This document shows, in pieces, positions 44,936 to 64,000 of a stretch of DNA of 64,000 bases; within the stretch, counting starts at the first letter, position 1; every line of letters begins with the position of its first letter. Source of the DNA: Basidiobolus meristosporus CBS 931.73 (taxonomy: Eukaryota; Fungi; Basidiobolomycota); the NCBI GenBank assembly GCA_002104905.1, contig MCFE01000077.1, positions 62,001 through 126,000 of the forward strand, read 5' to 3'. Under the pieces are notes generated by a model. It was not told the DNA's origin, did not search any database, and was given only the letters and a program-made list of their open reading frames with translations. The position numbers and the translations under genes were made by a program.

Positions 44936-46566
44936 AGAGCAAGGTTTGTATTTTCTTGAACAATTATAAGGACCATATTATGGATATTTGATACTTGGGC
45001 AAGATATTCCAGGAAAAACACAAAAAAGAGATTGGGCAGAAAACAAAAACCATATTGACCGGCTAATTGCATATATTAAGTAGGAAGTCTACCATTGGAT
45101 AGATTCTTCTGTACCATAGCAGAGTGACTTATGGCAGCTCAAATAAATAATTGTAAGTGATACCTTGATGGAGCACATGTACTAGATACCACCAAGGAGA
45201 TGTGATTGTGAAAGAATTTGGAAGCAATAGCCAATATAAGATATGGGAATAATCAGAATAACACCCATTGACCAGCAACTGCAATATCTGACACAAGAGA
45301 TGGGTGATTCTATACAAAGTGTCATCCTATGGAAGCCATGGGGGAGTGTCATTTCCCTATGATATTGTTGAAGTGAGGAAGGGACCAGAGACAATTTTGC
45401 TTAGCCTTTGCCAAAAGCAAACCTTACAGAAATCGGATGAACATCCCAACTAACTTACATGAATGATTAGTGGAATGGGAGTGTTGCAGGAAACAACAAT
45501 GACCCCTATTTACTCTGATATATATATAAAGTATGACCTTGATGCTTCTCCAAGCCAATGAAAATCCACCAGGTACTTCCCCCCCCCTGCCCCATTAGAA
45601 TCTAGTGGTGGCGATTTATGCTAAACCTTGGGACAAACCTTGTAGGGTTAAGCAGTCAATCTGGTAAAGCTTGGACGAATCATCAGTTTGGGGAGTGTAT
45701 AGAAGATCATGAGGTTGGGGCCGAATTATGTGATATGGGATGGGCCCTAGAGAGGTGGACTTAGGGGCAGTGATTGATAATGCCTGTATTGGCAGGGACA
45801 CAGAAATGCCCCTGATCCCGACCAAACAATGAAATGGCTGACTGTTGGTTCAATCGGATTTGGCCACCGGTCTGGCCGTCCATCTGCTTTCCGCGACCAC
45901 TGGTTCAGGTTGGATGGTTCGGTAGTGACAGCGCCACGACGATCCAACGGTCAGAGTACAAGGTATGGATGAAAATCTCTTGTCAGGTATCCACTTGCAG
46001 TAGATCTCAGACCCTTGCAAGTGGAGTCAAGAATTCGCAATGTTATCCCGTCCTCAAGCACCCAAGACCTGTCGGCCAGCATATGGGGCTATGGTGTGGG
46101 AGCCGAATGGTCCGGATATCCGGGACCTCATCAACTTCACCATCCCCCAGCGCACTTGGAATATTCGCAGTGCAGGATGGGTGCCAATCCCAAGCATTGG
46201 TCATACATCACGATAAATGTCGCGAAACGAAATCCGGAGATCCGCCGTCCCCCACTAGCCACGATCTCCGGGGGATCCCACCCATATGCGGTAACAACAT
46301 CTCATGCGGTTTATTTATGAAACGAATCTTGGTTAGGGCCCAGATTTACATCAGGTTGAGGAAGTGATGTGGTCGTTCGATACCAAACAACCTCACATCC
46401 ATCGAGGGTGATAACTGGGTGGTGGTTAGGGATAGCCACGATAGGCTATGGCCAGGGAGGGGGCGAGCTCCTCCTTGGTGGGGCTATTTCCAATCTCTGT
46501 GTATTGTACTTCATATGCCACAGGGGTTCTCTTGTGAGAGATCAAGTCGACGGGCAGCCACACAGC

Positions 46567-48100
46567 TCATGCTGTGACGGCTACCCGCTCTGACGGAGTA
46601 TCGTTGGAATAGACAGGGACTGCCTCTTCCCTGGGAAGCTGGGGGAATACCTTGTTCATTAGCGACTCCATCTCCCGTTCGGTGGTCCTCACCATTGGCA
46701 CGCATTCGCCCAGGTTGCCCTTCTTGTCGAGGTACAGGTAGGACTCCGTGCCGTGACCTTCCATGGAAACTATCTCCAGATCACCGCCGAAGTAGCGGGA
46801 TATGATCCGGGTCATGGGCAGACCACGGATTTTTTCCGGATGGAGCAACGAGTTGTTCAGGTGACTCCAGATGTTCCCTACCTTGGACATGGGGATGCCG
46901 CCACCCAAATCGCTGACTCTAAAGCAAACATCCTCCTTGCCTTCGGTGATCCGAACTTGCAGAGTCGGCATGCTCCTGGGCGAAGCGCCAGTTGCCTTGG
47001 AATGCTCGATGACCGAACTGATGGAATGCTTCATCACCTGGAACAGGCTATCTGGGAGATAATTGTCCGCGGCCAGGACGGACAAGTCCGGATTCTTGGT
47101 GATCAGCTCCACTTTGGGGGAATCGCAACTGTAAGGAATGGGTCAGTTTGGGCCAGAAGACAAGTTCGATGAACGCGGCGCATTACCAATAGTACTGGCT
47201 ACACCAGTATCTGGCTCTCTCAATCGCCTGTTCGGCAGCGGCGTGTGGGGAGATCTCGTTGATTACTGGCTGGAATCCGTCTAGCTGATGGAGACTTTGT
47301 CCTACAAATCAACGAACCGTCAGCAGGGCCACTTTGGGAAGGATCCCTAGGATGCCGCTTACCAATCAAGAAGCCGGTGCCATAATTCAAGGACAAATAG
47401 TTCGTCAGGAAATGGTCCATTTGTTCTCGGATAAATGCCTGATCACGGTTACATCTCCGTTTCTGCTCTGACATCATATGATTTAAACAATCACGCAATG
47501 ATGTTAGGCTTTGTAACTGTCTGGATTGTAACACTCTTAGGGCCGAAGCGAATCGTGCTAGATGCTGGGGTTCGGCCGGGACAGCGAGAGAGGTGAGAGC
47601 ACTGCAAGCGCAACTGTGTGAGTGGTGGGAAGTCCAGAGAGTCCATCCTGTCGCTTGTTACCTGATATCTTCCAGCAGATCAAGAGTGATGTTCTGGATC
47701 TTGGCGTTTACTTGGGGGTCCATTGGCTCAAAGGGAAGGCGGGTGTTGAGCAACTTGATCTCTTGGCAAAGGCGTTTGGGGAGCTCTGAGTGAAGGAACT
47801 CCATAGGAGCAAGGAACTTCTCTTTCTCAGGTGCCTCAGTCACATCACTTAATCATCGTTAGTCGCTGGTTAGGCTACATAGTATGGGGAGAGTAAATAC
47901 CGGCAGAACAAAGAAAGCATTAATGAACTGGCAGGTGTTTGGCGCTCCATGGCGTACATCTGCTGCAACTGTGGCGTTGCAATATCGGTTATGATTTGGT
48001 GAACAGAGGAGCTGGACTACGGAACACTTACCGAAGTACGGCTCAAGGGAGCAGTTACCAATCGAGCAAAAACGTCCTTGTTCAATGCTCTCAAACACAT
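46567..48100 (-). CDS. Mitochondrial PDK/BCKDK-family (GHKL-fold) kinase-like protein, 412 aa, 6 exons
   Basis: Exons 48032-48100, 47901-47968, 47662-47847, 47363-47601, 47187-47301 and 46567-47128 splice in phase (1239 nt) through 53-63 nt GT-AG introns. Motifs FLHSELPKRL, SDLGGGIP, RYFGGDLEIVSMEGHGT. The N-terminus resembles a basic presequence. Confidence 0.85.
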
Positions 48101-49421
48101 GGTGGGGTTCATTTTAGGAGGAGGTGAAGGTAAACAAGCGAAGTTTGGAATTGTAAGGAAGCAATCTGAGTTTCATCAAGCCTCAAGACAGCTTGGCCTA
48201 TATATAGGGCAAACAGACGGTGTACCTATTGTAATATACCGATCCTATGAGATCCGGCATGTGCCAACCCCAAATGCGATCTCACACTTCCCACTTATTT
48301 GTAAACTGCAGCCATTCCCCTTTCCACCACCCCCCCTCTGTCTTGGAAGTGGTTTTGATTTACCCGGATCGACTGGCTCCAAGGGATATAACCTGCAGCC
48401 CAATTCCTCATCAAGTGTTGGATTAATAATGGAGCCATGCCGCCGGCTTCCATAGATTGGGGATCAATATGAAAGCGGCGGATAGGCGATAATGGCTTTC
48501 ACACGCTTCGGCAAAAATTCCATTGCAATGCAGTGGGATTTGATAGCTAGATCGCGATAGAAATTACTATAAACTGTTAGAGAAGCAAGTGCATTGTACC
48601 TTGCGCATATTTTAAACTATTACCATTAGAGGGTACTCGTTTGATTTTCCCTCCAGAATTCCCTTTAGAGGCAACCACCGAAGGTTGCTCTACTGAAGCA
48701 TTCGTGACACAGCGATGGACACGTAGGGAGACAGCTTACCGATCACGTAACCCACCCCGCAAGCCCTCCAGCGCAAGCAGACTTGATTGTTGTCTTCTCA
48801 ATGGAAGTATGGACAATGCATTTCTATTTCTACGAATAATTCACTACCGGTGCTTGCCTGGCTCATCCCACCAATGACTCACAGTGAGTGCAGTTGGTAT
48901 AACATTACGATCCTCTGCCATTGCAGTTGAATTACGTGGACTCGAGCAACCTGGTTGCGATGGCGAGCCCATGTTTTAAAATGCGATCAAAAGAAATATA
49001 CAGCCCGTGGGATCATGTGATGCCCAGCACTTTTCTACCTCATATAACCTATTTATGGCATATGCATTGGTTCATGGTCACGACACGTTGGAATAGCGAA
49101 AAGGAGTGCTTGCCGACAGAATACAGCTCTTCTCCCTAGCTGGCGGGACATAGGCACTGCCATTGTTTCGCAGCCTGTGTGCTATTATGACCCTTGATTA
49201 TCATGGGGGAAGAATTTTACTTGATACTTAAGAATCTCATTGTATGCTTGTATTACTCACTGACCAAGTAATTAGAACAACGTAAACAAATAAATCACAG
49301 ATAGAAGTGTGCTCAAGCTGCCATCAGATGCTGAAGAAGACAGATATTAAGAAACTACGAGTTTGTTCTTGTGCTCTCCGGCCTGCTGACTGCTTAGTGG
49401 GACTCTAACATCTAATTCCAC

Positions 49422-50842
49422 TTACTCCTCAACACCCGACGAAGACTCTTCGGTACGTTTCGAAGCTTCTTCATGAAAGGGCTCTTGGGGCGGCGCATTG
49501 TTTCCTAGGCTGTCTGCGGTGTCGGGATTGGGATAACGAGAACTGCTGGCAACCCTCTGAGCAATCCAGTCGAACCACTCTTCCTCGGACTTCCCGTTGA
49601 GGATTCCGATAATCATGATGGTCATGTTGTCGCAGCCAATGCCCCCAAGCTCACAGTTAGGTGCTAGGCATTTGTTCATTATATTCTCGCAGATTTGCTC
49701 GAGTGAGTTCTTGCCGGCAATCTCCAGACGAATGTAGTCTATCACTTCCTGAGAAGTCATGCAGTCCCAGATACCATCACAAGCGATGACGATGAACTCA
49801 TCCTCGCTCGTGATCGAATGCTCAGTGATGTCGGGGTCAGCTACATGCAATCTGGATTAGATCCGATGGGTGTGGCTGCAGAGACAACAACCCAAGGCTT
49901 ACCTGTGACCGCTTGCTCTTCAGCCGATAGCTTGCTGTTTTGTTTGAACTCAAAATCCCCGATAGCCCGGGACAAGGCTAGATTACCGTTGACACGTCCG
50001 AATTCCACAAATCCACCAGCATTGATGATACGCGCAGATTCCCCTAGGTGATACTTGGAATTAATTGCGACTGCGGCGATCCGGTCGGTCAACTACCACT
50101 TACCTTGATTGGTAGGTTTGTGATCAAATGACAATGCTTTGGCTTCTCCATTTATGCTCATGACAGCACGAGAATCACCGGCGTTACCCTACAAAGCAAT
50201 AAGCGTTTACTCGCTGAAGGGTGCACGTCGGGAGGTGGGAAACCATACCACATATATCTTGTTATCGGGGGAGATGGTAGCAGACACCGCCGTACATCCA
50301 GATGGATCATGCAGGAACTCTACATCTGGAACCGGTGTAAGTCACTATCGCTATCCGGAAGAGGCGGGACCATTACCTTTTCTTAGGTCCTCGTCGATGT
50401 CGAGATACCCGTGCTTTATCGCCAGCTTGTAATCCCCATTTTGGAATCCATTTTCTGCGATCTTTTTGTGCAGATTCTTTCCGCAGTACTTTGCCGCGCT
50501 TTGACCTTTGACGAAAGTTACAGCAAGTTAGCCTTTCGAGCTGGCCAACCGGGCTAAACAGGTTCATTAACGTACCACCATGGCCATCGAACACCGCAAA
50601 GAAGCTGACGTCAGGATGGGCATCGAGACTTAGCAAGCAAGAATGTGCATCTTCCATGGCTGGGTAACGGGAGGAAATAGAGTTAAAGGAAAATGGATCG
50701 AGCCACAGCCAATGCGCAAAAGAGCCACCAAAAGGATACTTATACGCCAACCCTGCATAGAAGAGGAGCCGTAGATGAATCTGGAGTTTCCTCCGCGGTC
50801 GGATTCTTTTCCGGTGATTGGTTCGGATAAGGTCTGTCCCAT
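49422..50842 (-). CDS. PTC2: Protein phosphatase 2C, Ptc2/Ptc3 type, 345 aa, 7 exons
   Basis: Exons 50740-50842, 50576-50659, 50377-50505, 50249-50325, 50104-50188, 49903-50043 and 49422-49840 are in phase (1038 nt). [57 protein letters not shown]. Confidence 0.95.
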
Positions 50843-52381
50843 GTTTTCGTTATGGCTTGGGTAGAATGGTTTTGTGAATGCTTTTGGGGCTACGTAAAGT
50901 GGCTTTCACTCTTTGGTGGGCAATGCGAAGACAAACGAACGTTTGGATTGGTTAGCAAGGTTCCTCTTGATGGTTTAGCAAAGTGCTGGTTACTGCTTTT
51001 GTTTCGTTGAAGAGAGAGTTCCTACTTGAGATTCTTGAATCTAAGGAAAGATGAGTCCTCGTGAAATGGACTATAATACACGAGGGAGAAGAGATAAATT
51101 GGAGAAAATTCAGGTAGCAAGAACTTCACGGCACGTATTTTAGTCATGGACATTACTGGCACAGATGGCCTATTTCGATCCGTGACGTTAATCAAATGAC
51201 GATTATTACTGATTGAGAAATTTTAGGGGAGAGGGGTTAGAACCCTAACCCTAGTCCTGGCCATTTCCTCTTCTTTTCTTCCTAAAAACCCATTACAAAT
51301 CATTTTCGCCTGTTCTGAAATCAACTGTTGCGGTAATGTATCGTCGATGACAAAAGCCTTTGGTCACGAGCCATGTCATGATCACACGTGACGTGGTCTT
51401 ATGCTTGTCTATATCTAGTAAATAACCCAGCAAAGTAAACACGCATTTGGCCAATTTCACCACATCATTGGTCCATACAATCAAAGTGTAGATACTAGTG
51501 CTAGAATTCTAATTTAATGAGCCTTGGCCAATTGCAGGTTCTACGAATACGATGGATTACATGTTTGAGGATCTAACCGCATGGTTTGCGCCTAGCGTTC
51601 CACTGGAATATCGCCAGCTTTGGGGTAAATACTCGGGTTGATGCACTAGAGGGTTGGTGGAGTAGCTGCTAATATCCAGCTTACAGTTGAGAATGGCGGC
51701 AAGATCCAAGCGAGCTACAAGGAGCGGAGCGTAGAATATCTGTTCAGTCAAACAGCTGAAGATTCCCACATCGAGGAGTAAATCCATTTGAGTCATTCCG
51801 TAATACGCACCACCTTGAATTTAACTTCTCTCCAGCTTACTTCGTCAGGGGGGCAGATTGGTCTTCAGTGCCGACTGGATACTACGCTCGATAAAAGTTG
51901 GTTATCGGCTCAAACTCGGCAAATTCCTTTTGTTCGAAGGTATAAACCCCGTGTGGTCTTTGAACGATTTGTATTAACTACTGACGCATAGATTCACTAT
52001 CGAGCCAGCAAACCACTGAACAGCAGAGTGAACCTTTGAGGGAACACGTAACGGTTGAAGCGGCGCAGTTTCGCATCTCTGCCCGGTCCGACTCGAGTAA
52101 ACAGCTGGCAAGCACGCCAACTCGATCCAAACGGGCGCAACAGGGATAATACAAGGCGATATAAATAAAGCATGGGTCAGGCCAAGTTAAAGCTCGGGTA
52201 TAGAACAAAATTCAGGCGGCCCCATGGTTCAACAGTAACGACGAGTGTTTGAGGTGTCCAGAAAGATGAGATTTTATTTTGTTGTAGATAAGGGGCTTGG
52301 GGAGGAGATGAGATGAGCGCCGTGTATTTGAATAAAGGGAGGGTGGGGTGTGATGGTCAGAGGGGTCCTTCAGAGACTAGC

Positions 52382-53107
52382 TTAGATGGCTTTGTAGCCG
52401 CTGTCATAGTTGTAAGATTCAGTGTACGATGGCCCAGTCTTGTAGGCTGTGCGAGCACCGAAATTGCTCTTGTATCCAGTATGGCTACCTTTGAAGTACT
52501 TCTTCCAGTCATCTTTGAGGCTTTTGATGAGGTCGCCGTATTTACCGGTACCTGCTTCAGCGATGGCGAGGCCATAACCCTGCTTGACACCAACCTCATA
52601 TCCCGTCTTCTCACCTAATTCAAAGCCTTGTTTGAAACCTGCGGTCTCACCCTTTCTCTCGGCAGCTTTCTCAGCCTTCTCATATCCGTTCCAGTATCCC
52701 TTGTCGACACCATCACGCACTCCATCTTCCCATCCAGAGACAACTCCTTTGCGTTGACCCTTGAAGCTACCTTGAGCCTGTCCTTTCCCGAACCCTTCTT
52801 TGCCACCCTTGACATAGCCTTCCTTGAATCCCGATTTGCGGCCAACATTATATCCGTTCTCGTATTGGTTATAGTAATTGTTGTACCCGCCTCCATAAGA
52901 CTTGGTTGGCTTCACCCAAGGGCGTTTGACCTTTTTACCATAATCATCATTCCCATACTCCTTTGCCTTGTAAGTCTTGGTAATGGGCTTCACCAAGACC
53001 TTAGGCTTGGGTTGGTCGTATTCAACATTCTTCACCACCTCCTCTGCGGACACCAAGGTAGTAGAGAGTGTAGCCAACGCACACAAAGCAAGAATGGAGA
53101 ATTTCAT
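52382..53107 (-). CDS. Secreted Gly/Lys/Tyr-rich protein with G-x-x-x tetrad ladder (paralogue 1, 241 aa)
   Basis: Signal peptide MKFSILALCALATLSTTLVSA at ATG 53107. Intronless, TATAAA at 53183-53188, clear paralogue upstream. Confidence 0.88.
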   Translation of the reverse strand: MKFSILALCALATLSTTLVSAEEVVKNVEYDQPKPKVLVKPITKTYKAKEYGNDDYGKKVKRPWVKPTKSYGGGYNNYYNQYENGYNVGRKSGFKEGYVKGGKEGFGKGQAQGSFKGQRKGVVSGWEDGVRDGVDKGYWNGYEKAEKAAERKGETAGFKQGFELGEKTGYEVGVKQGYGLAIAEAGTGKYGDLIKSLKDDWKKYFKGSHTGYKSNFGARTAYKTGPSYTESYNYDSGYKAI

Positions 53108-53182
53108 GATGGAGATTATGATGAGTTGGGAAAGGGACAAGTGCAACCACTGGTAAGGATGGGTGATGGCTGAAGAATCGCC

Positions 53183-53188
53183 TTTATA
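53183..53188 (-). promoter_or_regulatory. TATA box of paralogue 1
   Basis: TATAAA ~76 nt upstream of the signal-peptide ATG, matching the layout of paralogue 2. Confidence 0.6.
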
Positions 53189-53310
53189 CTCGATTTCCGT
53201 CGTTTCAGATACGACTCCTTGAAGAGGAAACACCCATCTAACAGTGTCACCATTGTTTCAGGATCGATCTTCATTTGAATCACGTTGAGCATCTGAAACG
53301 ACTGCTAATG

Positions 53311-53468
53311 TAGCGTACACACTGTAATGTCGCATCCACACAGGGTGTGTCGTTCTGTCATGTAGCACCCGCACCAAAAAGGTTGGCACCATCCACACAG
53401 GGAGTGCCTATCTATACCATAGCATCCACACAGGGAACACCATTCTATAACTTAGCATCCGCACAAGA
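53311..53468. repeat. Array of a 14-bp motif (GCATCCACACAGGG), mostly at 33-bp spacing
   Basis: Copies start at 53332, 53365 (degenerate), 53389, 53422 and 53455; a weaker one near 53313. Confidence 0.75.
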
Positions 53469-53633
53469 AGTGCCAGCAAACTCACAAAGGTGCATGCGCT
53501 GATCATTACTTTCGATCCATAAACGTTGCGCACTCGAGGTTATTTTGCAGAAATGAACTTTATTCAGGAATGTGAGAAAGACAGAAAGGTAAACTTATGA
53601 GGGGGCGAATGTCAACAAAATTGGGTTCACTCT

Positions 53634-54620
53634 CTAATACTGGATCTTGTTGACACCCGTGTCATATGAGGTGTACTTGGTCTCGCTCCAGCCATTGCCA
53701 CCATCATACTTGTTTTCACCCCAACCATAGCTCCCACCGTTGTATTTGTTGGCGTCCCAACCACTACCGGCACCGTTGAACTTCTTGTCATCCCAACCAC
53801 TACCGGCACCGTTGAGCTTCTTGTCGTCCCAACCACTACCAGCACCGTTGAACTTCTTGTCGTCCCAACCACTACCGCCACCGCTGAGCTTCTTGTCGTC
53901 CCAACCGTAGCCTCCGTCGTTGTAGAACTGTCTCCAACCGTTCTTGAACTTCTGGATCAGTTCTTCGTAATTCCCAGTGTGGGCATTTGCGGCGGCCAAG
54001 GCGATTCCTTTCTTCAGGCCTAGCTGGTAGCCAGCCTCTTCACCAAGCTTAAGACCCTGTCTGAATCCTGCGTCCTGTCCTTTCTTTTCAGCGATTTTTT
54101 GGGCTTCGTCGTATCCTTTCCAGTAGCCATTGTCGACTCCGGTTTGGACCCCCTCAGCCCAACCGCTGGCGGCACCCTTTCGCTCGCCCTTCGCATCTCC
54201 CTTCACGAAGCCTTTTTTGAAGCCTTTCTCAACTCCGGTCTTGTATCCGGGCTTATAACCGGCCTCGCGGCCATTGTTGTAGCCTACATCCCATTGGTCA
54301 TAATGGCTCTCGTAATCCTTGCTATTCCCCTTCTCTTCCCATCCGCCCTTCCCCTTGTTAACCTTGATGGGGCTGGTGCGAACCACCTTGGCGGAACCCT
54401 TTCCACCATTGCGGTTGTAGGTTCCTTTGTCAACCTTGATGGGGCTGGTGCGAGCTACCTCGACATAATCCTTCCCATCATCGTAGCCATAGGATTCCTT
54501 GTCAACCTTGATGGGGCTGGTTCGAGCCACTCCGATCTTCGCCTTCTCCTCTTCAGCGGCCGACACTAACAGAGATGGAGAGGCACTGACAATTACGGCG
54601 AAGATGAGGGAGTATTTCAT
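53634..54620 (-). CDS. Secreted Gly/Lys-rich protein with G-x-x-x ladder and two further repeat blocks (paralogue 2, 328 aa)
   Basis: Signal peptide MKYSLIFAVIVSASPSLLVSA, 3 x 24-aa repeat, tetrad ladder, 5 x 12-aa repeat. Confidence 0.9.
   Translation of the reverse strand: MKYSLIFAVIVSASPSLLVSAAEEEKAKIGVARTSPIKVDKESYGYDDGKDYVEVARTSPIKVDKGTYNRNGGKGSAKVVRTSPIKVNKGKGGWEEKGNSKDYESHYDQWDVGYNNGREAGYKPGYKTGVEKGFKKGFVKGDAKGERKGAASGWAEGVQTGVDNGYWKGYDEAQKIAEKKGQDAGFRQGLKLGEEAGYQLGLKKGIALAAANAHTGNYEELIQKFKNGWRQFYNDGGYGWDDKKLSGGGSGWDDKKFNGAGSGWDDKKLNGAGSGWDDKKFNGAGSGWDANKYNGGSYGWGENKYDGGNGWSETKYTSYDTGVNKIQY
53746..53915 (-). repeat. 36-bp coding tandem repeat (GSGWDDKKxNGA)
   Basis: TCCCAACC anchors at 53755, 53791, 53827, 53863 and 53899. 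Confidence 0.95.
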
Positions 54621-54715
54621 GGCGGCGAGAAAGAGACGAGGAGAGGTGAGTGGAAGATGCAGAAAGTTGGAGAACTATCGGATACACCAGCCTTGACTCC
54701 CTCAAATCCATACAC

Positions 54716-54721
54716 TTTATA
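54716..54721 (-). promoter_or_regulatory. TATA box of paralogue 2
   Basis: TATAAA ~96 nt upstream of ATG 54620. Confidence 0.6.
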
Positions 54722-55293
54722 GGAAATTAAGAACACCGACTCATGCAGGATGCAAATGCTCCTTGTTTCGTCTTGCTTTGGATGGTGGTCATCGTATGAA
54801 ACCTACCATCCAAACCTCCTTTGGTTTGAAAGCACTGCAGATTGTCCATTCATAACCTCTGTTTCGATGATCAAACCATTGATACATATTGGGGCATTCT
54901 GGTGCCGAATTTTCTTACAAAGCAAGGTGTTCTGCTACATGTGAAGATCAGTCACCCTAGAACTTTGGGGAGCCACCGGTTTTCGTCCCACAGCCAATTC
55001 AAGTTGGACTGTTACCAGCAACATCATCGCCAGGAATCGCCAGTATGTGATTCCCTCTTTACAAGTCCCAATTTGGCCAGCTTCCGTGGATTGTGTTACG
55101 AGGTTGTTATCAGCAGCCCAGATTAGGCTAGCGGTTCATCCATCTCCTTTTTCGCTCCCTCCATACGACGGTTCACATGAGGTCCCGCCATTGGAGGAGT
55201 GAAATTACTGTAAAACCTTTTCCAAGATACGCTTATTTTGTCGTGGAAAATCTATCTATATACCGTGCATCCTCCTTGGCAGAGGTTCCAGCA

Positions 55294-56799
55294 ATGAAGG
55301 TCCACCACTTGTACAGAAAACTTTTGACCAACTCGCCCAACATATACCAACCCCCGCTCGCTCTCAGCTTGGCTCGGACTAGGCGCCTCAAGTGGCTAGG
55401 AGTCGGGCTATGCTTGCTGTTGCTGGGAGCTGCGTTCTTCCGAAGCATCTTGACAATACCAACCACCTTGGACATCTCTCCAAAGGACCTTGCTGCCCTC
55501 ACTTGCCCCTCTCTCATGCTCCCTGCTACTCCAGTATCCTTCCATGGTTCATGTCAAGAGATTCCATCTCTGGACGAGAAATTCCGTGTTTTCAATTGCA
55601 AGTCCCCAGATACGTGCATGGTGGGGTATGTTGAGATCCAAAGGGTCAACAAGGATTACTGTGAGGAGGCCAAAAAGATCGACTACTCACCCAGCCCTGT
55701 CCACCAGGAATACTTTGGTCGTATCGATGGACCGGATACTTTCTACGTGAACTTCACCGGTGCGCAGAAACTGGCAGTGTCTGAATGGCAGTTCCGCGAG
55801 GACTGCAGTTATCGCTTTCCGTATACCTTTCACAACTCAGGGGCTGTCCAGCTCAGCATCACCCATGTATACGACGGGTTCAGAGGGGTGAATGAGGTTT
55901 CCCAAGAATGGCCCGAGTATCTCGGAAATGTAGTTGTTCAGGACCATGAGGACACCATATGTCCCCAATGTCCGGCTACAAATACGAGCGGCCTCCAGTC
56001 CAATGAATCCACCTCTATTTGTGACGACGAGCGGCCTGTTCGAGGGGCTTGGGTCCCTTGGCAAGATACGGCTCTTTCTACCTCGGGATACCTATGGTCT
56101 CCCCTAGGGTGCGTGTATACGCACAAGATCAAACCAATCCAGGAGAGAGCGTGCCTGGCTAATCCGCGCTCTATTCTATTCACCGGAGATTCCCAAATTC
56201 GGGTCACCTATGACAACATATGGAGACGCTTCGATGGGCAATTGGGTAGAATCAACACCTTGAATCGGTTCCTGGATCGCAAGAAGGTGATCAAGAACGT
56301 AACCTTGTATCATCACAAAGACGTCTTCCTGGAGGACATAGCCGGCCGTACGCCGGCCGAATTGCTGACCTACGACACCATCGTGTTCAACTTCGCCCAG
56401 TGGCCGGCGTCCGGGCCCAACAATGGTGGCCATTGGACCACCGAGAAATTCCTCTCAAGGTTGACGAATGTAACGGACTACCTGGCGGGAATTCGGGACT
56501 CACGCCCGAAGGGGAAGCCATTGCGCTTGATATGGCACGGAATTCACGCCTTTTCCACCACCAATCCCTATTCCAAAAGCCGTATCGACTGGCGTACCAA
56601 CCCTCGGCTGAAGAACTGGAACGTATTTGCCGAGGATATAATGAAGGGACACGGGATCCGCTCGATCAACTCTTTTCAGATCACTTATCCAATGATAGAT
56701 ACCAGCCCTGATAAGGCCCATTACTTCGGTACAGACGCCGAAGAGGCCATTGTAGATGAAACTCTACACAAGCTTGACTTGTGTGAACCAGTGTACTAG
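55294..56799 (+). CDS. Type II membrane SGNH/PC-esterase-family protein (NXPE/TBL/Cas1-like), ~501 aa
   Basis: Intronless ORF 55177-56799; the likelier start is ATG 55294. One hydrophobic anchor (WLGVGLCLLLLGAAFF), Cys-rich stem, ILFTGDSQIR and C-terminal DKAHY (GDS / DxxH). Confidence 0.78.
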   Translation: MKVHHLYRKLLTNSPNIYQPPLALSLARTRRLKWLGVGLCLLLLGAAFFRSILTIPTTLDISPKDLAALTCPSLMLPATPVSFHGSCQEIPSLDEKFRVFNCKSPDTCMVGYVEIQRVNKDYCEEAKKIDYSPSPVHQEYFGRIDGPDTFYVNFTGAQKLAVSEWQFREDCSYRFPYTFHNSGAVQLSITHVYDGFRGVNEVSQEWPEYLGNVVVQDHEDTICPQCPATNTSGLQSNESTSICDDERPVRGAWVPWQDTALSTSGYLWSPLGCVYTHKIKPIQERACLANPRSILFTGDSQIRVTYDNIWRRFDGQLGRINTLNRFLDRKKVIKNVTLYHHKDVFLEDIAGRTPAELLTYDTIVFNFAQWPASGPNNGGHWTTEKFLSRLTNVTDYLAGIRDSRPKGKPLRLIWHGIHAFSTTNPYSKSRIDWRTNPRLKNWNVFAEDIMKGHGIRSINSFQITYPMIDTSPDKAHYFGTDAEEAIVDETLHKLDLCEPVY

Positions 56800-57727
56800 T
56801 CCGTAAGCGTATGTTAATTCTCTCGACCACTTGATGTAATAAATCTCACCTATTTGGGAATGTGTGACCAGGCTGGGGGCCCATGTTGGGAAGTATCCAG
56901 AAATACATTCCGCAATTACTTGTAGATAGAGTTGTGGCACTGCGCATTCGGACCCAGCGACTGTGGATCTACATATCCGCATGCTACGGACTGGATTCGA
57001 TCCACAAGGATCTAGTGGGCTTATACGAGTCGACATGCAAATCTAAGCAGCACCATACAGCAAGCTCGTTCACAGCATGAAAACGCATATGCAAATCCTC
57101 TGTGTCGCTTCAAGGGGAACGCCGAAAGACACGGCTACCAAAAGGCAGTACAGGTTGGTCAGGCCAATCTGTGCGCCCCTTTCAGATGGTTAACGATTCA
57201 CCCGCCGTTGTATGATCCTGTGGGAATCATTGGTGGCTGGATATTGATGATGTCTTCATTTATATTAATAGATGAATCTGGATAGATCATTGGCAGGAAA
57301 CCATGGGACTTCAGGACATCCAGGTGAGTAGGAATGCCACGGATTCCTAGCGCCTCATTGATTCTAGGGATGTGTGAATATGTGGGTGCTGCACAAATCT
57401 GCAACTGCTATGTTTTGTCGAATCTCCCGTATCTGAGTGGATCCCGCTCCTCTCACTCATATTCGCCCAGGCCGATTTCTTCTTGCTTGACTTTCCCCCT
57501 TCCCAACTTGGCTCTTAGCCCACACCTTCATTGCTGCCCCTCTTAGAGCCCTCTGCTTCTCCCACCACCCCCACCCCTACCTGCCGGCTTGGAATTCGGT
57601 TGATACTCTCGCCCAGGCCTTATCTATCTACCCAGTGAACAGCCCTCAACCAAGCGTGAAGAAACTCCCACCCGACAAGACCGTTCCCTAAGCCCTTACC
57701 AGTCGACCAGTAGTCTCTTACTTCATC

Positions 57728-59234
57728 ATGACCAAACCAGACTTGTTCGAAAGACGAGCATCACTGAGCGTGGCCGCGAAGCAGACGACGAAGGACGATT
57801 TTGAGGTACCTTTGTTGAATATTTTACCCCTCCTCACCCCCGCACTTACGGGAGAATCCAATTCCGTTGGGCTGGAGGTGGAAGAGAGACCTTCGCAGAG
57901 GCTAATCCTATGTGTATTTTAGCTTGACAAAAACTCGACTGGCGAGTCTTCCTCACAGGCCGGCCCCGCGAAGCACATTATCCCAACTCCTCCCTCCTCA
58001 CCTCTCGTTTTGACAACCCCCAGGGGTGGGGCTTCCTCTGTACTGAGTCTCCAACAACAACAACAACACCAGCAGCAGCAGCAACCTTATGTTTCCTCCG
58101 CACCAATCTCTCGTGCGCTTGAAGCTCCTCACAAGCCCTGCGACTTGGTGAGTTCAAAGTGCAGTACTTTTTCACCCACTGTTAATCCAACCACCGACCT
58201 AGAGGCATCAGTCGGTACCTTGAAAACGGCCAAACACCAGCATTTCGCCCCCGAGCTCCTCTATAAGATCTTCTCCTATCTATCCTTCACCCAATCCACC
58301 CTGGGCACGTGCGCACTCGTGTGCAAGCAGTGGAACACCATTGCGTGCACCATACTCTGGCGACGACCCATCTTCACCTCCCTCCAATCGGTTGAGAAAT
58401 TCATCTCCGCTCTAAATATAGACCTCACACTACAACCAGAACTCTCCTCGTTCCCTCCACCCTGCCCAGCCCCTCCTCCTCACCGGCTCCTCGGCGGCCA
58501 CATCAACCAATGCTGGTGGGGGTGAGGTCGAAGTTGGGTCTTTCAAATCCAACGACCAGCATGGGGATGGGAGCGGGAATCACTCGAACTTTGTGGCACA
58601 GAGATATGCCTCCCTCGTCCGAATCATCGATTTCACTTTGCTGGACGAGATCCATCGAAACAGCACCGTACTATCACAGCACATAGTTCGACTGATCCCC
58701 TTGGTGCAGCCAAGCCTTCAGTGCCTTGACCTAGGGTTCAACAAGGGGGTGAAGAACTTCGACTTACAGCGGCTCTCGCCGTGGCTCTCGAACCTGACCT
58801 CCCTGAACCTCGCTGGAGGCAGCCGCACCGACATAGTGCTCACTAAGCTGAGCAAACACTGCCCGAACTTGACCCGGCTTTCAGTCAGCTGGAACTCCCA
58901 GCTCACGGACTTTGGGTTCGTCGAGATGGCAAGACATTGTCGTAAGCTTCGGGCCCTTGACGTGACGAACTGCGCCCAAATCACCGACACCGGGGTAATG
59001 GCGCTGGCGGTGTACTGTACACAGCTACGAGTGCTGAGCGTCTCTTACTGCCAGTGTGTCGGGGAGGTGGCGATCTGGGAGCTGGTGCGAAGCTGCAAGG
59101 AGTTGAAGCTCATCAACGCCCTGGGATGCATCAACTTGTCGAGAAGGTTCCCGGACGAGTTGAAGCTGAAGTACCCGGAGCTTCTGATCAACGTCCCGGG
59201 GGTGCTTCCTTTTTACTATCCAGAGATCGCCTAG
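57728..59234 (+). CDS. F-box / leucine-rich-repeat protein (FBXL/Grr1-like) with an unresolved +1 frame switch near 58422-58525
   Basis: Exon 57728-57805, intron 57806-57922, then polyQ and F-box (PELLYKIFSYL...CALVCKQW). Cys-containing LRRs in 58593-59234. Confidence 0.82.
58052..58084 (+). repeat. CAA/CAG microsatellite encoding QQQQQHQQQQQ
   Basis: Directly visible. Confidence 0.9.
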
Positions 59235-60755
59235 ACTTTCCCCACCCACAACCGTATCTCTCACCGCCCTAACCACCAACCCTCATACTCCCCCTCAACC
59301 CCACGCTCCACTTTGAAGCCCTTAGTTTATGTTAATTTCCCTCGAGAATCTCCCTCACGAATCCGATCATATCAGTGAACGAAGTGAGGTCTATATATAA
59401 CACTACCCTGTGTATCAACCTACAGGGACATTTTGTTGATTTAAGCAAGCGAATGAGCCGCTACTCTAACCAAGTTAGTACACCCCCACACTCTCTACCC
59501 ATTCGCCCACTTCCAACGCCCTCCATCCGTGACGTGGTCGCGTTCCTTTGTAATTTCCATGGAAGGAAATCCGGGAAATCAGCAGTCACCTAGCTATATT
59601 CACCTCCCTCCAGATCGAATCCCCCCTAATCCCCCACCACCATCACCGCCCCTACCCATCCCCATCCTCATTGAACTATCGATAAAATTCAGCCAACTCC
59701 CGGAACCCCCATTGAACCCCGTTCATCTTCACCCACATCGATCAGCACACCTCTTTGATCTCAAGGTTGGTGTGGATGTAGATGTGTAGAGGTGTTCATG
59801 GCGGCGTAGACCTCGATGGAATGATCTAGATTCCCTGCTCAGTGCCTGTGCTACATAAAATCCCCCTCCCCAGCATGCAGGGTAACATTTCGAGGTTACG
59901 ACCATAGTACTTGGATCACTCACAATATATCGTGTACTTGGGTACGTTCTCGAACCCGAACTGAACCATCCCGCTGCCTCCAGGAGACGCCACCCCTTGC
60001 TGCCTATGTCGCACGAGGAGGCACTCTGAGGTGTGGATGACCAGAGCTGACGAGCGAAATCGATGGGGTGTACAGTACAAATGAAGTAACAATGATGTTT
60101 GGGGCGGGGGTCGGAGTGGGAATGGGAGCGGGACAAGGAGCAGGATGAAGATCAACATGAAGGTAAGGCGAGGTAAATTGGTGCCAGTAAATGTAAACGT
60201 CAGAGAATCAAGAAATTGGCCGAATGTTTTAGACGAAACCAACATTTTTTTTTCTTATTTCCTTTTTCAGTTTTTTTCATGGAATTTTTTTTCCAGCTTG
60301 GTCAACTAGTGATTCGAACGAAGAAAAAGTTCTCGTAAAGGAGAGAAGAGGAGAGAGGGGTAGGGGTAGAGGATATTTAGGGTACACAGTGATATGGGTT
60401 ATCATCTAGAACCAAACATGAGCGACATCCGAAATGTTCCTTATGTCTTTTACAGGTTTTTTTGGGGTTTTCTGTTCTAACTAATAGCTAAAGAAGTGGA
60501 TCGTTGGAAAATCTTGGAAAATTTCGAGCTCGGCAAGAAAAAAAATGAATCGGCCTGTGGTTGGGGGAGGTGGGGACGGGTGGCGGGAGTAGCTGGAATT
60601 CACCAGATACTCTCCGGCCCCCACTCCTCCTCAAAAGTGGATCGGCAAAATGTAAGCATATGGATGAACCCGTGGATTGCCCATCAGGTTCCTACAAAGT
60701 CAGTTTCAGAACGAGAGATTCCCTGAGTCCCGGGGCCCGCTTGGCGGGGAGCTAT

Positions 60756-61562
60756 TTACAAAAGATATGACTGCAACGGCTGATGACGAGTGAAACTCTC
60801 ATTAGAACGATTTCTCTTATAAGAATGTTTACTGCAAGCGACGAGGTCGTTGCTCAACGTGAGTTGGCAACCACAGGGGGCTCGAGTAGGCTGTGCATCC
60901 CAGGCTTGTGCTTGGGCGGCATTGCTTAAGCTTTGTTGGAGTGTGCTTAACCATTGATTGTACTCATCAGCGCTAATGAACAGGTCGTAACGCAAAGCGG
61001 TCAGGAATTCCACCTCCACAAAATTCAACACATGAAGAGGAAACCCTGCGGTCTCGGACCAGGTTTGGTTGGTGTAAACCAGGTCGTCGTGAAACTTGGC
61101 AGCGGTTATCAAGGCGACGGTAAACAACAAGAACTCATGGCCGGGCTCGGGCTTCGCCATGGGGTTGTTTACCCTGTATTTATGGAGATACTTCACACTC
61201 AGAAGAATGGACGCCGAGCTGATGTACAGCTTACGCATAAGCTCCTTGGCGTAATTTCTGAAGGCAGGGCTCGCGGAGTGAGAGCCCCATGTAGTGCTTC
61301 CATGAACAATATTGTAAACCACATCGGCAATTAAGCCAGTGATATCAGGGTGGTCTTCCAAGCTCGGTGCGGTGAACCCGTTAGCGGAGTGCATCGTGGG
61401 CACCGGCTGTTGGACCATACCAGTGGACTGCAACGCAGGCTGTTGGTATTGAGAACTTGAGTGATGATAGCAAGGGAAATAACCTAAATTTGAACGATTC
61501 GAGTTACCATTAGAAGTGGTGTTGGGTCCAGACCAAATATAGTGGGATTCCAAGCTGTTCAT
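60756..61562 (-). CDS. Pho85-type cyclin (Pcl/Clg1-like)
   Basis: Cyclin box FRNYAKELMRK...SILLSVKYL...ALITAAKFHDDLVYTNQTWS...LNFVEVEFLTALRYDLFIS. The ORF is open to 61745, so the start is uncertain. Confidence 0.85.
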   Translation of the reverse strand: MNSLESHYIWSGPNTTSNGNSNRSNLGYFPCYHHSSSQYQQPALQSTGMVQQPVPTMHSANGFTAPSLEDHPDITGLIADVVYNIVHGSTTWGSHSASPAFRNYAKELMRKLYISSASILLSVKYLHKYRVNNPMAKPEPGHEFLLFTVALITAAKFHDDLVYTNQTWSETAGFPLHVLNFVEVEFLTALRYDLFISADEYNQWLSTLQQSLSNAAQAQAWDAQPTRAPCGCQLTLSNDLVACSKHSYKRNRSNESFTRHQPLQSYLL

Positions 61563-63218
61563 AAACGATAGCAATTCAAGTATGAGGTTATTCAAATGGT
61601 TCCCTTGTCTATCTAACGACTCTTCGTATGTAAAGAAAGGGGTGGGGAAGGCGGTGATCACCAGAAAAGCAGAAGCAAGTTCAGTGCGATAACGATTCAT
61701 CAGGGAACGACCCAGCCTTATATAGGCCGCACTTCCTGTCATCAATTAACCACTCAAACACATGAAAATGGAAAATGGAAAAATAAGTCAGTTTCAAATC
61801 AAATTTATACATGCTGAATAACAGCAGCTGGGATTTATTGGGGGTGGGCCAATGGTTACATGGGAATGGATCATGGCTCCTAGGCAGAATCTATCATTGA
61901 TGGCTGTTGATTCGCGGTTTGAAGATAGTGGCCAACTGCGGTCATCAGTCATCTGACGAAAGCCCTTATTGATGAGAAGTTGTAGAATAATAAGCATTCA
62001 TGCAGCCGACCAAGCACTTGTCCAACTCATCTAGTGCCGCGGGTGTTGGTACCAGAAGACGGCTTATGATGTAGTGTAATTAACATCAAATTTGACGTGC
62101 GGCTCGACCATCGCAGTGATTCGTCAGACCTTTGTTTTGCTGAGTGCCCTAGTTAGAGCGGCATTCAGCTCTCCCCGATGATTGGCTGCACCCATCGTGA
62201 ATCAACCAACCCATGCCTATCGACCCGGCCTGGAATGCCAATTGGACGCTGGGGTGGTTTGCGGCCGGAGTTGTCAGTGACTAGGTGCAGCAGCGCTCCC
62301 TTAGTAATTAGCGATAATGACTGTTCAATGAATGCGCGATTGCGGGTAGGGCTTTGGGCGAGGCTGCCGGAGTCTCAATCTCCCGGACTACGCCCCAATC
62401 TTTCTAGAAGATCCAATGCCGAAATTGACGCATGCATCCCACACATACCTCCAATGCAAGGAAAACACTCTTCACCATCTGTGGTGCTGCGTTATTTGAT
62501 ACGACCCGACTCCTATATTCCCCTTAACACCCAGCAATTCGGTAGTCGATAATCACATGAATATGCTCTAAGCCACACATTGATGCCATTGATTGGTTCA
62601 TATCTCCGTGTAGGTGGCCTGACCAGTGTATATTCGCCAAGGTGGGTGGATATGCTGGCTGGCCTCTGCTACGGCGTTCTTAAAGCTGGCTATTGAGGCG
62701 AGGTATTCGCAGTGTGAGTATATTATCTAGTGTTGGCGTTCTCGTGGCATCCAACTGGGCTCATTCATATCTGAGAATGCGGTGATCTGAAATGAGATGG
62801 TTGTGCCACTGACAACAGGTTTGGATGTCTGGAATTGTGCCCTGTGTGCAGCCGGCGAGGTGTCGTGAAGGAAACCAAGTTGGGTGGCAGCCTGGTGTGT
62901 AGCGGGTTCATAGAGGAGTCATGAAGCGGGTATGTGCATTGGAGTCTCGTGATTCCAATGACGACACATCATAAATACCTATGGAATTATTCAGTCTTAT
63001 TTAAGTATGCTCGGTTTAGATATTTTACCAAAAAGGGGAGATAATGGCAATGGAGTGTATGAATTCAAATGAAGTTTAGCTATAGGGCTTAATCCATTTT
63101 CATCCTAACCCATAGCTTTGCCCGTTCCCCCGACTTCACTCCATGTCCCACAGCCAAGTCAGCACCAACAACAGTACCCCTTCTATGCAGACGAGCCATC
63201 TGAGTCAGGAGAAGCACA

Positions 63219-64000
63219 ATGGGAGAACACATGCCGCCAAAGCGAAGGAAACTAAGTCTGGCCGATAAAGAGAGTCAAGGTGAACGCAAAGCAGACAGTC
63301 GTTCTTCAACCCCAGTCTCCCGGGACAACTCCTTCCAAAAACATAAATCCCACCAGAGCGGGAAATCTGGGAATTCGTTTTCTGGCGACTCTCGCAAGAA
63401 AGGGAAAAAGCAACGGGCCCTAGTCGAGGTGGATTTTGTGAGCAAGCCCGAAAGTTACAAGAAGGTGAAGTCATCCCGGGACTTGTCCCCCCAAAACGGC
63501 CTCAACACAGCTGGTAACGAGTCTAATCCCAGCACTTCTATGGATGTGAAAATTTCAGCTTGGCACGCACTTGGTCCTATTGAAGGAGGAAGAAACGGCT
63601 CTTTGGGCTCTGGTCAGCTCCACAGAAAAGGAAAAAACTACAAACCGGTGAGTGAGAGGCGAGCGACTGCGCAGAAGGAGAATCGCAACGCTTCTAGGAA
63701 AAAAAACACTCCTACTCGTCCAACTTCTATGAACCCTTTAGCACCTGAGTTCGTTTGGCGAGATGAGCCGAATAGAGCATCAGGTAAACAGACTGTTGTA
63801 CCCAACGAGCACAGTTTCTCCAACAAGCTTGAGAAGCGTATTGCTGAAGAAACCAAGGGGCTCGCAGAGTCCAACGACAGCCATCACCAAAAGCAAGGAT
63901 GACCCATCTTTAGGCACGACCGCTACCAGTAAACTTAGAGTTGACTGTCCAGAATTCAAACCCTCCCTGAACTTTAATTTCTCCAAGCTTAATCTAAACC
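63219..64000 (+). CDS. Start of a basic, disordered protein with PAM2 (PABP-binding) motifs; runs off the window; +1 frame switch between 63742 and 63899
   Basis: MPPKRRKL NLS-like start and SMNPLAPEFVW. The +1 frame is open from 63742 to the end and encodes SKLRVDCPEFKP. Confidence 0.65.

Follow-up and report, generated by a model that had tools for sequence, protein, structure and literature searches.

Ladders of in-phase Gly-x-x-x units (GX3 ladders) have so far been considered a rare feature, seen in FliH/YscL and in the cytosolic Yae1-Lto1 pair. FliH ladders follow the pattern AxxxG(xxxG)mxxxA with variable length, and dimerisation has been proposed for them. Trost and Moore described such ladders as extremely rare outside FliH, with no solved structure of a long ladder (PMC2674601). 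Glycine mutations in the deca-GX3 motif of Lto1 weaken the Yae1-Lto1 complex, indicating that the ladder is needed for the pairing of two different ladder proteins, and Paul et al. reported the motif in no other eukaryotic protein (PMC4523923). AlphaFold 3 models a Yae1 domain and Lto1 as a coiled coil in which the two intertwine along a continuous glycine interface (PMC12810181). Here we describe two tandem ladder genes, A and B, on the minus strand of a 64,000-nucleotide (nt) window of Basidiobolus meristosporus CBS 931.73 (assembly GCA_002104905.1, contig MCFE01000077.1, positions 62,001 to 126,000; positions below are counted from the first letter of this window). According to the list of open reading frames (ORFs) and their translations, gene A (53634..54620) and gene B (52382..53107) are intronless and encode GX3-ladder proteins of 328 and 241 amino acids, respectively, both putatively secreted. 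Judged from sequence, A and B represent a putatively secreted, eukaryotic, 26-unit, fixed-length form of a known motif class and belong to a large, undescribed class of exported ladder proteins.

FliH/YscL (SctL), the stator-like regulators of type III export ATPases, resemble A and B in their GxxxG ladders, which vary in length and terminate in Ala units. However, they are bacterial and cytoplasmic, their m averages about 2-10, and their C-terminal domain binds FliI. The ladder of A and B has two closing and two internal Ala units but no Ala unit at its N-terminal end. It scored 21-35 bits with the NCBIfam FliH models, the equivalog cut-offs of which are 180-293, and neither A nor B matched Pfam FliH. 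The Yae1/Lto1 proteins (YAE1D1/ORAOV1), which act in cytosolic iron-sulfur (Fe-S) protein assembly, also carry an in-phase Gly-x-x-x ladder, which is predicted to be helical and frequently has an aromatic residue at the first x position (x1). They are small and cytosolic, have 10 units (about 40 residues) and lack a signal peptide, and the C-terminal Trp of Lto1 is functional. In contrast, A and B have a signal-like N-terminus, 26 units, Tyr/Gly/Lys-rich flanks, no C-terminal Trp and a Pfam score below the cut-off. Because of the signal peptide, the 26 rather than 10 units and the absence of a C-terminal Trp and of a FliI-binding domain, A and B were judged not to be Yae1, Lto1 or FliH. By the same comparison, the A/B family is an exception to the claimed eukaryotic restriction of deca-GX3 to Yae1/Lto1.

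The 26-unit ladder and selection on it

The ladder occupies residues 113-216 of A (53973..54284, minus strand) and residues 85-188 of B (52544..52855, minus strand). In both proteins it consists of 15 G, 2 A, 7 G and 2 A units at period 4, making an unbroken small-residue ladder of 26 units and 104 residues in a single phase. The initial annotation had given 15 G, 2 A and 7 G units in one phase and a length of 96 residues. Those 24 units are exact in both proteins, and two more in-phase Ala units extend the ladder to its full length. Both A and B belong to the ladder class, defined here by at least 10 consecutive small-x-x-x units in one phase. When each protein was shuffled 20,000 times, the longest run of Gly, Ala or Ser at period 4 averaged 4-5 units and never exceeded 11-12, so the 26 units observed are not a product of chance.

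All 26 ladder positions are identical between A and B, whereas the x1, x2 and x3 positions match in 13, 9 and 10 of 26 units, respectively (41% of all x positions). Divergence of the x positions and of the flanks had been noted correctly in the initial annotation. Over a 136-residue core the two proteins were 48.5% identical, with a nonsynonymous divergence (dN) of 0.39 and saturated synonymous sites. The codons of the ladder residues were identical in 4 of 26 units, the longest identical nucleotide stretch over the ladder was 8, and no DNA tandem repeat was found in the ladder of A or of B with Tandem Repeats Finder. A recent duplication or gene conversion behind the identical ladders was ruled out by the few matching codons, the short identical stretch and the synonymous saturation. 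Because so few ladder codons match, the x positions are diverged and five proteins of the family align here without gaps (described below), the ladders of A and B are evidently held by selection. The comparison supports A and B as real, old tandem duplicates that have diverged and have been selectively maintained.

The ladder is hydrophilic, with a mean Kyte-Doolittle hydropathy of about -0.9 and a best 19-residue window of 0.13-0.33. Charged residues account for 30-32 of its 104 residues, and the ladders of the five Basidiobolus-type proteins all have a net charge between +2 and +6. Acid/base pairing of the paralogues was rejected on account of this uniformly positive charge. The hydrophobic moment of the ladder in A and B was 0.30-0.34 at 90 degrees, 0.01-0.05 at 100 degrees and 0.01-0.03 at 160-180 degrees. 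Since the moment peaks at 90 and not at 100 degrees, the apolar stripe of Gly and mostly aromatic x1 residues would spiral around a helix without forming a straight amphipathic face. The low moment at 160-180 degrees also excluded an amphipathic beta strand or amyloid, and a collagen or polyproline-like structure was excluded by the Gly period of 4, not 3.

Some pore-forming toxins have glycine zippers. A and B could similarly be membrane-active, either as glycine-zipper pore formers, an option raised in the initial annotation, or as antimicrobial helices, and they are putatively secreted, Cys-free and basic (isoelectric point (pI) of 9.0 and 9.5 for mature A and B, respectively). However, the best hydropathy window is well short of membrane-spanning values, the ladder has no straight amphipathic face, and the pI of the relatives P0015 and P0028 (5.6-6.6) is in the acidic to neutral range. 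With its low hydropathy and many charged residues, the ladder falls outside the glycine zippers in the sense of a hydrophobic, membrane-inserting helix with GxxxG. A membrane-active role is thus very unlikely, and the pore-former option is disfavoured.

Putative export signals and the Basidiobolus family

By inspection, the N-termini of A and B are shaped like a cleavable signal peptide, as had been proposed for both. Each begins with Met-Lys, followed by a hydrophobic core of about 15 residues and a V-S-A end, the whole segment covering residues 1-21 (54558..54620 in A and 53045..53107 in B, minus strand). A contains no Cys and B contains one, at residue 9 within the signal, so that neither has a Cys beyond it, as also stated before. 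A signal-like start of the same architecture, ending in small-x-small, is common to all five Basidiobolus-type proteins and to P0016 of Smittium, and N-x-S/T glycosylation sequons are present in P0015 and P0028. From these features we infer that A and B are exported.

A word-index search with B returned B itself (P0001), P0002 and weak bacterial proteins with lipoprotein-like N-termini. P0002, a protein from a JGI data set encoded on a 904-nt contig, was 56% identical to B. The same search with full-length A gave zero matches, A itself included, and its low-complexity repeats probably swamped the candidate list. An exhaustive profile search, with the cores of A, B and P0002 as the query alignment, gave 733 cluster representatives at E<=1e-3, 47 at E<=1e-10 and only P0002 at E<=1e-30. 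Past the family, scores fell from 245 to 102 bits, and the lower matches reflect the glycine pattern and nothing else. Two true family members were recovered from among short matches, namely P0028 from B. meristosporus CBS 931.73 (ORY05313.1) and P0015 from B. ranarum (KAK9761004.1). Save for one protein of uncertain source, the family as delimited by these searches is known only from Basidiobolus. It is small and made up of putatively exported, Cys-free proteins with much Gly, Lys and Tyr. No description of the A/B family was found in the literature on the Basidiobolus secretome, on Yae1_N/PF09811 or on secreted GxxxG coils.

A six-protein alignment (A3) was made of A, B, P0002, P0015, P0028 and P0016 of Smittium. 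A, B, P0002, P0015 and P0028 were gap-free through all 26 units, while both flanks were gap-rich. When the clade of A, B and P0002 is compared with that of P0015 and P0028, identity at the x positions is 17-27%. In the latter clade, the internal Ala pair is Ser/Gly or Gly/Gly and three Gly units are changed to Ala or Ser. With Asn or Val in the final unit, this clade has a small-residue run of 25 units. Specific x residues are invariant in all five proteins. At x1 these are Tyr (units 1, 4, 14 and 22), Arg (unit 2) and Glu (unit 21), and at x2 Trp (unit 14).

The best fungal match outside Basidiobolus was OLY81161.1 (P0016) from Smittium mucronatum, a gut-dwelling member of the Zoopagomycota. 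P0016 resembles A and B in its signal-like N-terminus and long GX3 ladder but differs in having 45 units and a Cys-rich C-terminal domain. It was 32% identical to B over 41% of B in a local BLASTP comparison and 23% identical in the A3 alignment. Its public label, 'Epsin-1', looks wrong; the sole Pfam match at E<=0.001 was to Yae1_N. The initial annotation had made its proposal depend on a ladder length that does not vary freely among homologues. Going by the aligned proteins, ladder length is fixed inside the Basidiobolus family (constant in the five proteins) but not beyond it, where it is 45 units in Smittium and 11-92 units in the wider class.

Yae1_N (PF09811, cut-off 27.5 bits) was the only Pfam family reached by A (21.2 bits) and B (25.3 bits), both just below the cut-off. 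The GX3 ladder is therefore already modelled by Pfam and does not lie outside known families. P0028 (29.2 bits) and P0015 (31.6 bits) were above the cut-off, and UniProt automatically names both as 'Yae1 N-terminal domain-containing'. These matches, together with a tandem pair whose matched ladders recall the Yae1-Lto1 heterodimer, would fit paralogous cytosolic Fe-S adaptors of the Yae1/Lto1 type, or some other intracellular GX3 pair, with an N-terminal hydrophobic segment that does not work as a signal. However, the likeness to Yae1_N is limited to the glycine pattern, and the hydrophobic segment with its small-x-small end recurs in all six fungal members. The ladder has 26 units compared with 10, the C-terminal residues are I-Q-Y in A and K-A-I in B, with no C-terminal Trp or Phe, and P0015 and P0028 have sequons. 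We regard a cytosolic adaptor as very unlikely.

The wider class of ladder proteins

The statistics of the wider class refer to the top 149 profile matches, and the Pfam scan covers 106 of the matches. The longest ladder per protein among the top 149 was 11-92 units with a median of 26, one protein having no ladder by a six-unit criterion. An export-type N-terminal hydrophobic segment was found in 73 of the 149, several of them lipoprotein-like. Some matches carry phage-tail or cell-surface domains. The earlier statement that ladder examples are intracellular or membrane proteins does not hold in view of these matches. Among the 106 matches scanned, 99 had Yae1_N, 5 had FliH and 4 had Phage_tail_C, and LRR_5, SH3_3, CBM_5_12 and PEP-CTERM were each found in single members. 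Names were looked up for 20 matches, and all that were named were 'hypothetical', fungal labels excepted. The PHROG families matched by ladder proteins have no assigned function.

Exported or phage-borne ladder proteins from metagenomes include the lipoprotein-like P0003/P0004, P0033 and P0060, as well as P0024 with Phage_tail_C and members of PHROG 4785. They resemble A and B in their long GX3 ladders, often of the form G-Y/F-x-x. In these proteins the ladder is a module beside surface or tail domains outside the cytoplasm, which suggests a rod or stalk role. Unlike A and B, they are bacterial or viral and vary in length from 11 to 92 units, and they share the glycine pattern but not the family-specific residues. 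P0024, P0034, P0036, P0041 and similar proteins combine long GX3 ladders with a Phage_tail_C tip domain. They match PHROG 4785, a family to which no function is assigned. A tblastn search of annotated phages with a phage-tail ladder protein returned only 'hypothetical protein' and one variable-region feature. The domain arrangement suggests that the ladder may act as a fibre or stalk in phage tails. Overall, the GX3 ladder is a widespread module, frequently located outside the cell or in phages, and it is apparently unstudied.

Possibly non-Yae1 GX3-ladder proteins are present in nematodes too. In Pristionchus pacificus, genes with Yae1_N matches are enriched among genes induced by a bacterial diet, which the authors read as 'ribosome-associated' (PMC13068944).

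The wider class also bears on the origin of the family. Basidiobolus is a gut fungus, and the family could have been taken from gut-habitat bacteria or phages and domesticated in Basidiobolus and, separately, in Smittium. Nearly all profile matches look bacterial or phage-like, with lipoprotein-like N-termini, Phage_tail_C, PEP-CTERM or SH3_3. The named fungal matches come from only two gut-associated genera, and the genes are intronless. On the other hand, scans of the genomes of 185,579 bacterial and archaeal species (GTDB), of IMG/VR and of JGI metagenomes with family-specific peptide patterns gave no confirmed relative, the P0002 scan included. The drop from 245 to 102 bits past the family leaves the glycine pattern as the shared feature, and a simple repeat of this kind can arise independently. 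In addition, both genes carry TATA and poly(A) signals of eukaryotic type. We therefore consider it unlikely that the family came from bacteria or phages.

A proposed paired rod and its genetic setting

AlphaFold2, run with an alignment of 60 sequences picked for full-length ladder matches, predicted a single helix for residues 5-114 of the core (B residues 76-185) with a mean predicted local distance difference test (pLDDT) of 73.9. In the same model of the B core, a five-residue break (115-119) was followed by a 17-residue amphipathic helix (H120-136). This short helix corresponds to residues 191-207 of B (52487..52537, minus strand), and by alignment its counterpart in A is residues 219-235 (53916..53966, minus strand), in both cases past the ladder. 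The model supports a helical ladder in B, and we take it as support for a helix rather than for a fold. A Foldseek search of PDB with the AlphaFold2 model gave no match, as expected for a lone long helix.

Taking the sequences, the model and the analogy with Yae1-Lto1 together, a secreted rod that pairs via the glycine stripe is the best reading of A and B, and we hold it with moderate confidence. The initial annotation had proposed an undescribed secreted fibre, adhesive or wall protein, possibly a length-matched heterodimer. A rod or fibre is still favoured, although the motif itself lies within known families.

The core of A and B would form one continuous alpha-helix of about 110 residues and a length of about 15 nm. 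With a small residue every 4.0 rather than 3.6 residues, the stripe of Gly and mostly aromatic x1 residues would wind around the helix. Standard helix parameters give an advance of 40 degrees per unit, or one turn of the stripe in 36 residues. Two such helices could keep Gly on Gly only by steep right-handed wrapping, the geometry of the classical GxxxG crossing. A lone ladder helix would be expected to be unstable and to pair, Gly face to Gly face, with a second ladder helix. By analogy with Yae1-Lto1, the product would be a tightly wound, right-handed, two-stranded rod. Steep right-handed wrapping accords with the AlphaFold 3 model of the Yae1-domain/Lto1 pair (PMC12810181) and with the loss of Yae1-Lto1 binding on Gly mutation. 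The partner could be the same protein or a paralogue with a ladder of equal length, and unit-for-unit matching of partners would account for the absence of insertions and deletions in the ladder while the flanks vary freely. The Tyr/Gly/Lys-rich flanks and the young repeats of A would project from the rod ends, and the likely site of action would be the cell wall, the spore surface or the extracellular matrix. Pairing through the glycine stripe is thus proposed by analogy, and an extracellular structural or adhesive role is what the sequence features suggest.

Several results weigh against this proposal. With the 6-sequence alignment, AlphaFold2 gave a structure that was helical throughout but with a pLDDT of 35. 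The ESM Atlas model was also of low quality (pLDDT 0.46) and gave no feature match. The helix call hangs on an alignment of distant ladder proteins, in which the register could be shifted by multiples of four. Sequence searches of PDB with A and with the family profile returned only a Plasmodium low-complexity insert, and there is no solved long GX3 ladder for comparison. Secretion is judged from inspection of the sequence only, and no clue to function was seen in the genomic neighbourhood of A and B.

The low confidence of the 6-sequence AlphaFold2 run and of the ESM Atlas model would also be expected if A and B were intrinsically disordered. They would then be secreted low-complexity proteins rich in Gly, Tyr and Lys, such as an adhesive, a coacervate or a wall filler, and the period-4 Gly would result from repeat expansion and form no rod. 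A and B contain 16-18% Gly, 13-15% Lys and 7-10% Tyr, and the flanks of A carry young low-complexity arrays. However, disordered regions tolerate insertions, deletions and phase slips, whereas the 26 units are gap-free in five proteins with x identity down to 17%. Moreover, the ladder contains no DNA tandem repeat, its codons are randomised between A and B, and specific Tyr, Arg and Trp residues are invariant at x positions. We therefore doubt that A and B are disordered and retain the paired rod as the better explanation.

Repeats are found in the flanks of A. A young 72-bp tandem repeat of 2.5 copies (54353..54530, minus strand), identified by Tandem Repeats Finder and as peptide repeats, encodes 'ARTSPIKV[DN]K' units N-terminal of the ladder. 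The motif sits in 24-residue units, and P0002 retains one 'ARTSP' unit. The C-terminus of A has seven 12-residue 'GW[DGS][DAE][KNT]K[FLY]' repeats (53673..53906, minus strand), and within this run Tandem Repeats Finder detected a 36-bp DNA repeat of 4.8 copies with 90% matches. Young repeat arrays were thus gained on either side of an ancient ladder in gene A only. As a conjecture, the Tyr/Gly/Lys-rich flanks and the Trp-containing repeats of A may hint at surface, wall or adhesive contacts.

Gene A runs from an ATG at 54620 to a stop at 53634 on the minus strand. The ORF listed for gene B opens with a GTG at 53233, and its first ATG is at 53107. A TATAAA box lies about 100 nt 5' of the ATG of gene A (54716..54721, minus strand) and another about 80 nt 5' of ATG 53107 of gene B (53183..53188, minus strand). 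ATG 53107 is favoured as the true start of B because its TATAAA box sits within the longer, GTG-started ORF. AATAAA signals are located 70 nt past the stop of gene A (53559..53564, minus strand) and about 104 nt past the stop of gene B (52273..52278, minus strand). Both frames are unbroken from ATG to stop and alignable end to end with full-length relatives, so introns are not called for. The initial annotation was correct on both points, the TATAAA boxes and the lack of introns. The exact sequence of B was found in NCBI, UniRef and EukProt, while that of A was not found in the protein collection searched. The proteins are small (22-33 kDa), and their mature parts are Cys-free.

The spacer between A and B contains a 33-bp tandem repeat of 2.6 copies with 75% matches (53390-53475). 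The G+C content of the window steps up at about 46 kb, from 37-42% (1-46000) to 46-53% (46001-64000), and both ladder genes are in the richer part. The divergent neighbour of gene A is a 540-amino-acid ORF (55177-56799, plus strand) with an N-terminal hydrophobic anchor and many Cys residues. By eye, it has 'GDS' and C-terminal 'D-x-x-H' motifs reminiscent of SGNH/PC-esterase-type enzymes, but no Pfam match was obtained for it at E<=0.01.

A and B provide a eukaryote with putatively exported ladder proteins, in which the ladder is 2.6 times longer than the deca-GX3 motif and fixed in length. The profile search adds hundreds more ladder proteins that reach about 90 units and carry export signals or phage-tail domains, none of them named or structurally solved. 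As small, Cys-free proteins, A and B would be a convenient object for the first structure of a long GX3 rod. A test of whether period-4 Gly gives a steep right-handed coil would be relevant to coiled-coil theory and protein design. Basidiobolus gains a lineage-restricted set of putative surface or matrix proteins.

A stronger and rather unlikely form of the proposal makes A and B, perhaps together with the unlinked P0028, obligate partners in a length-matched rod of about 15 nm, a steeply right-handed coil of two or more strands joined by a continuous Gly interface. If true, extracellular fibrous proteins of eukaryotes would gain a new architectural class, and the large, unstudied set of exported and phage GX3 ladders, for which there is no solved structure, would have its first tractable model. 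In Basidiobolus, such a rod may serve spore or conidial adhesion, or wall architecture.

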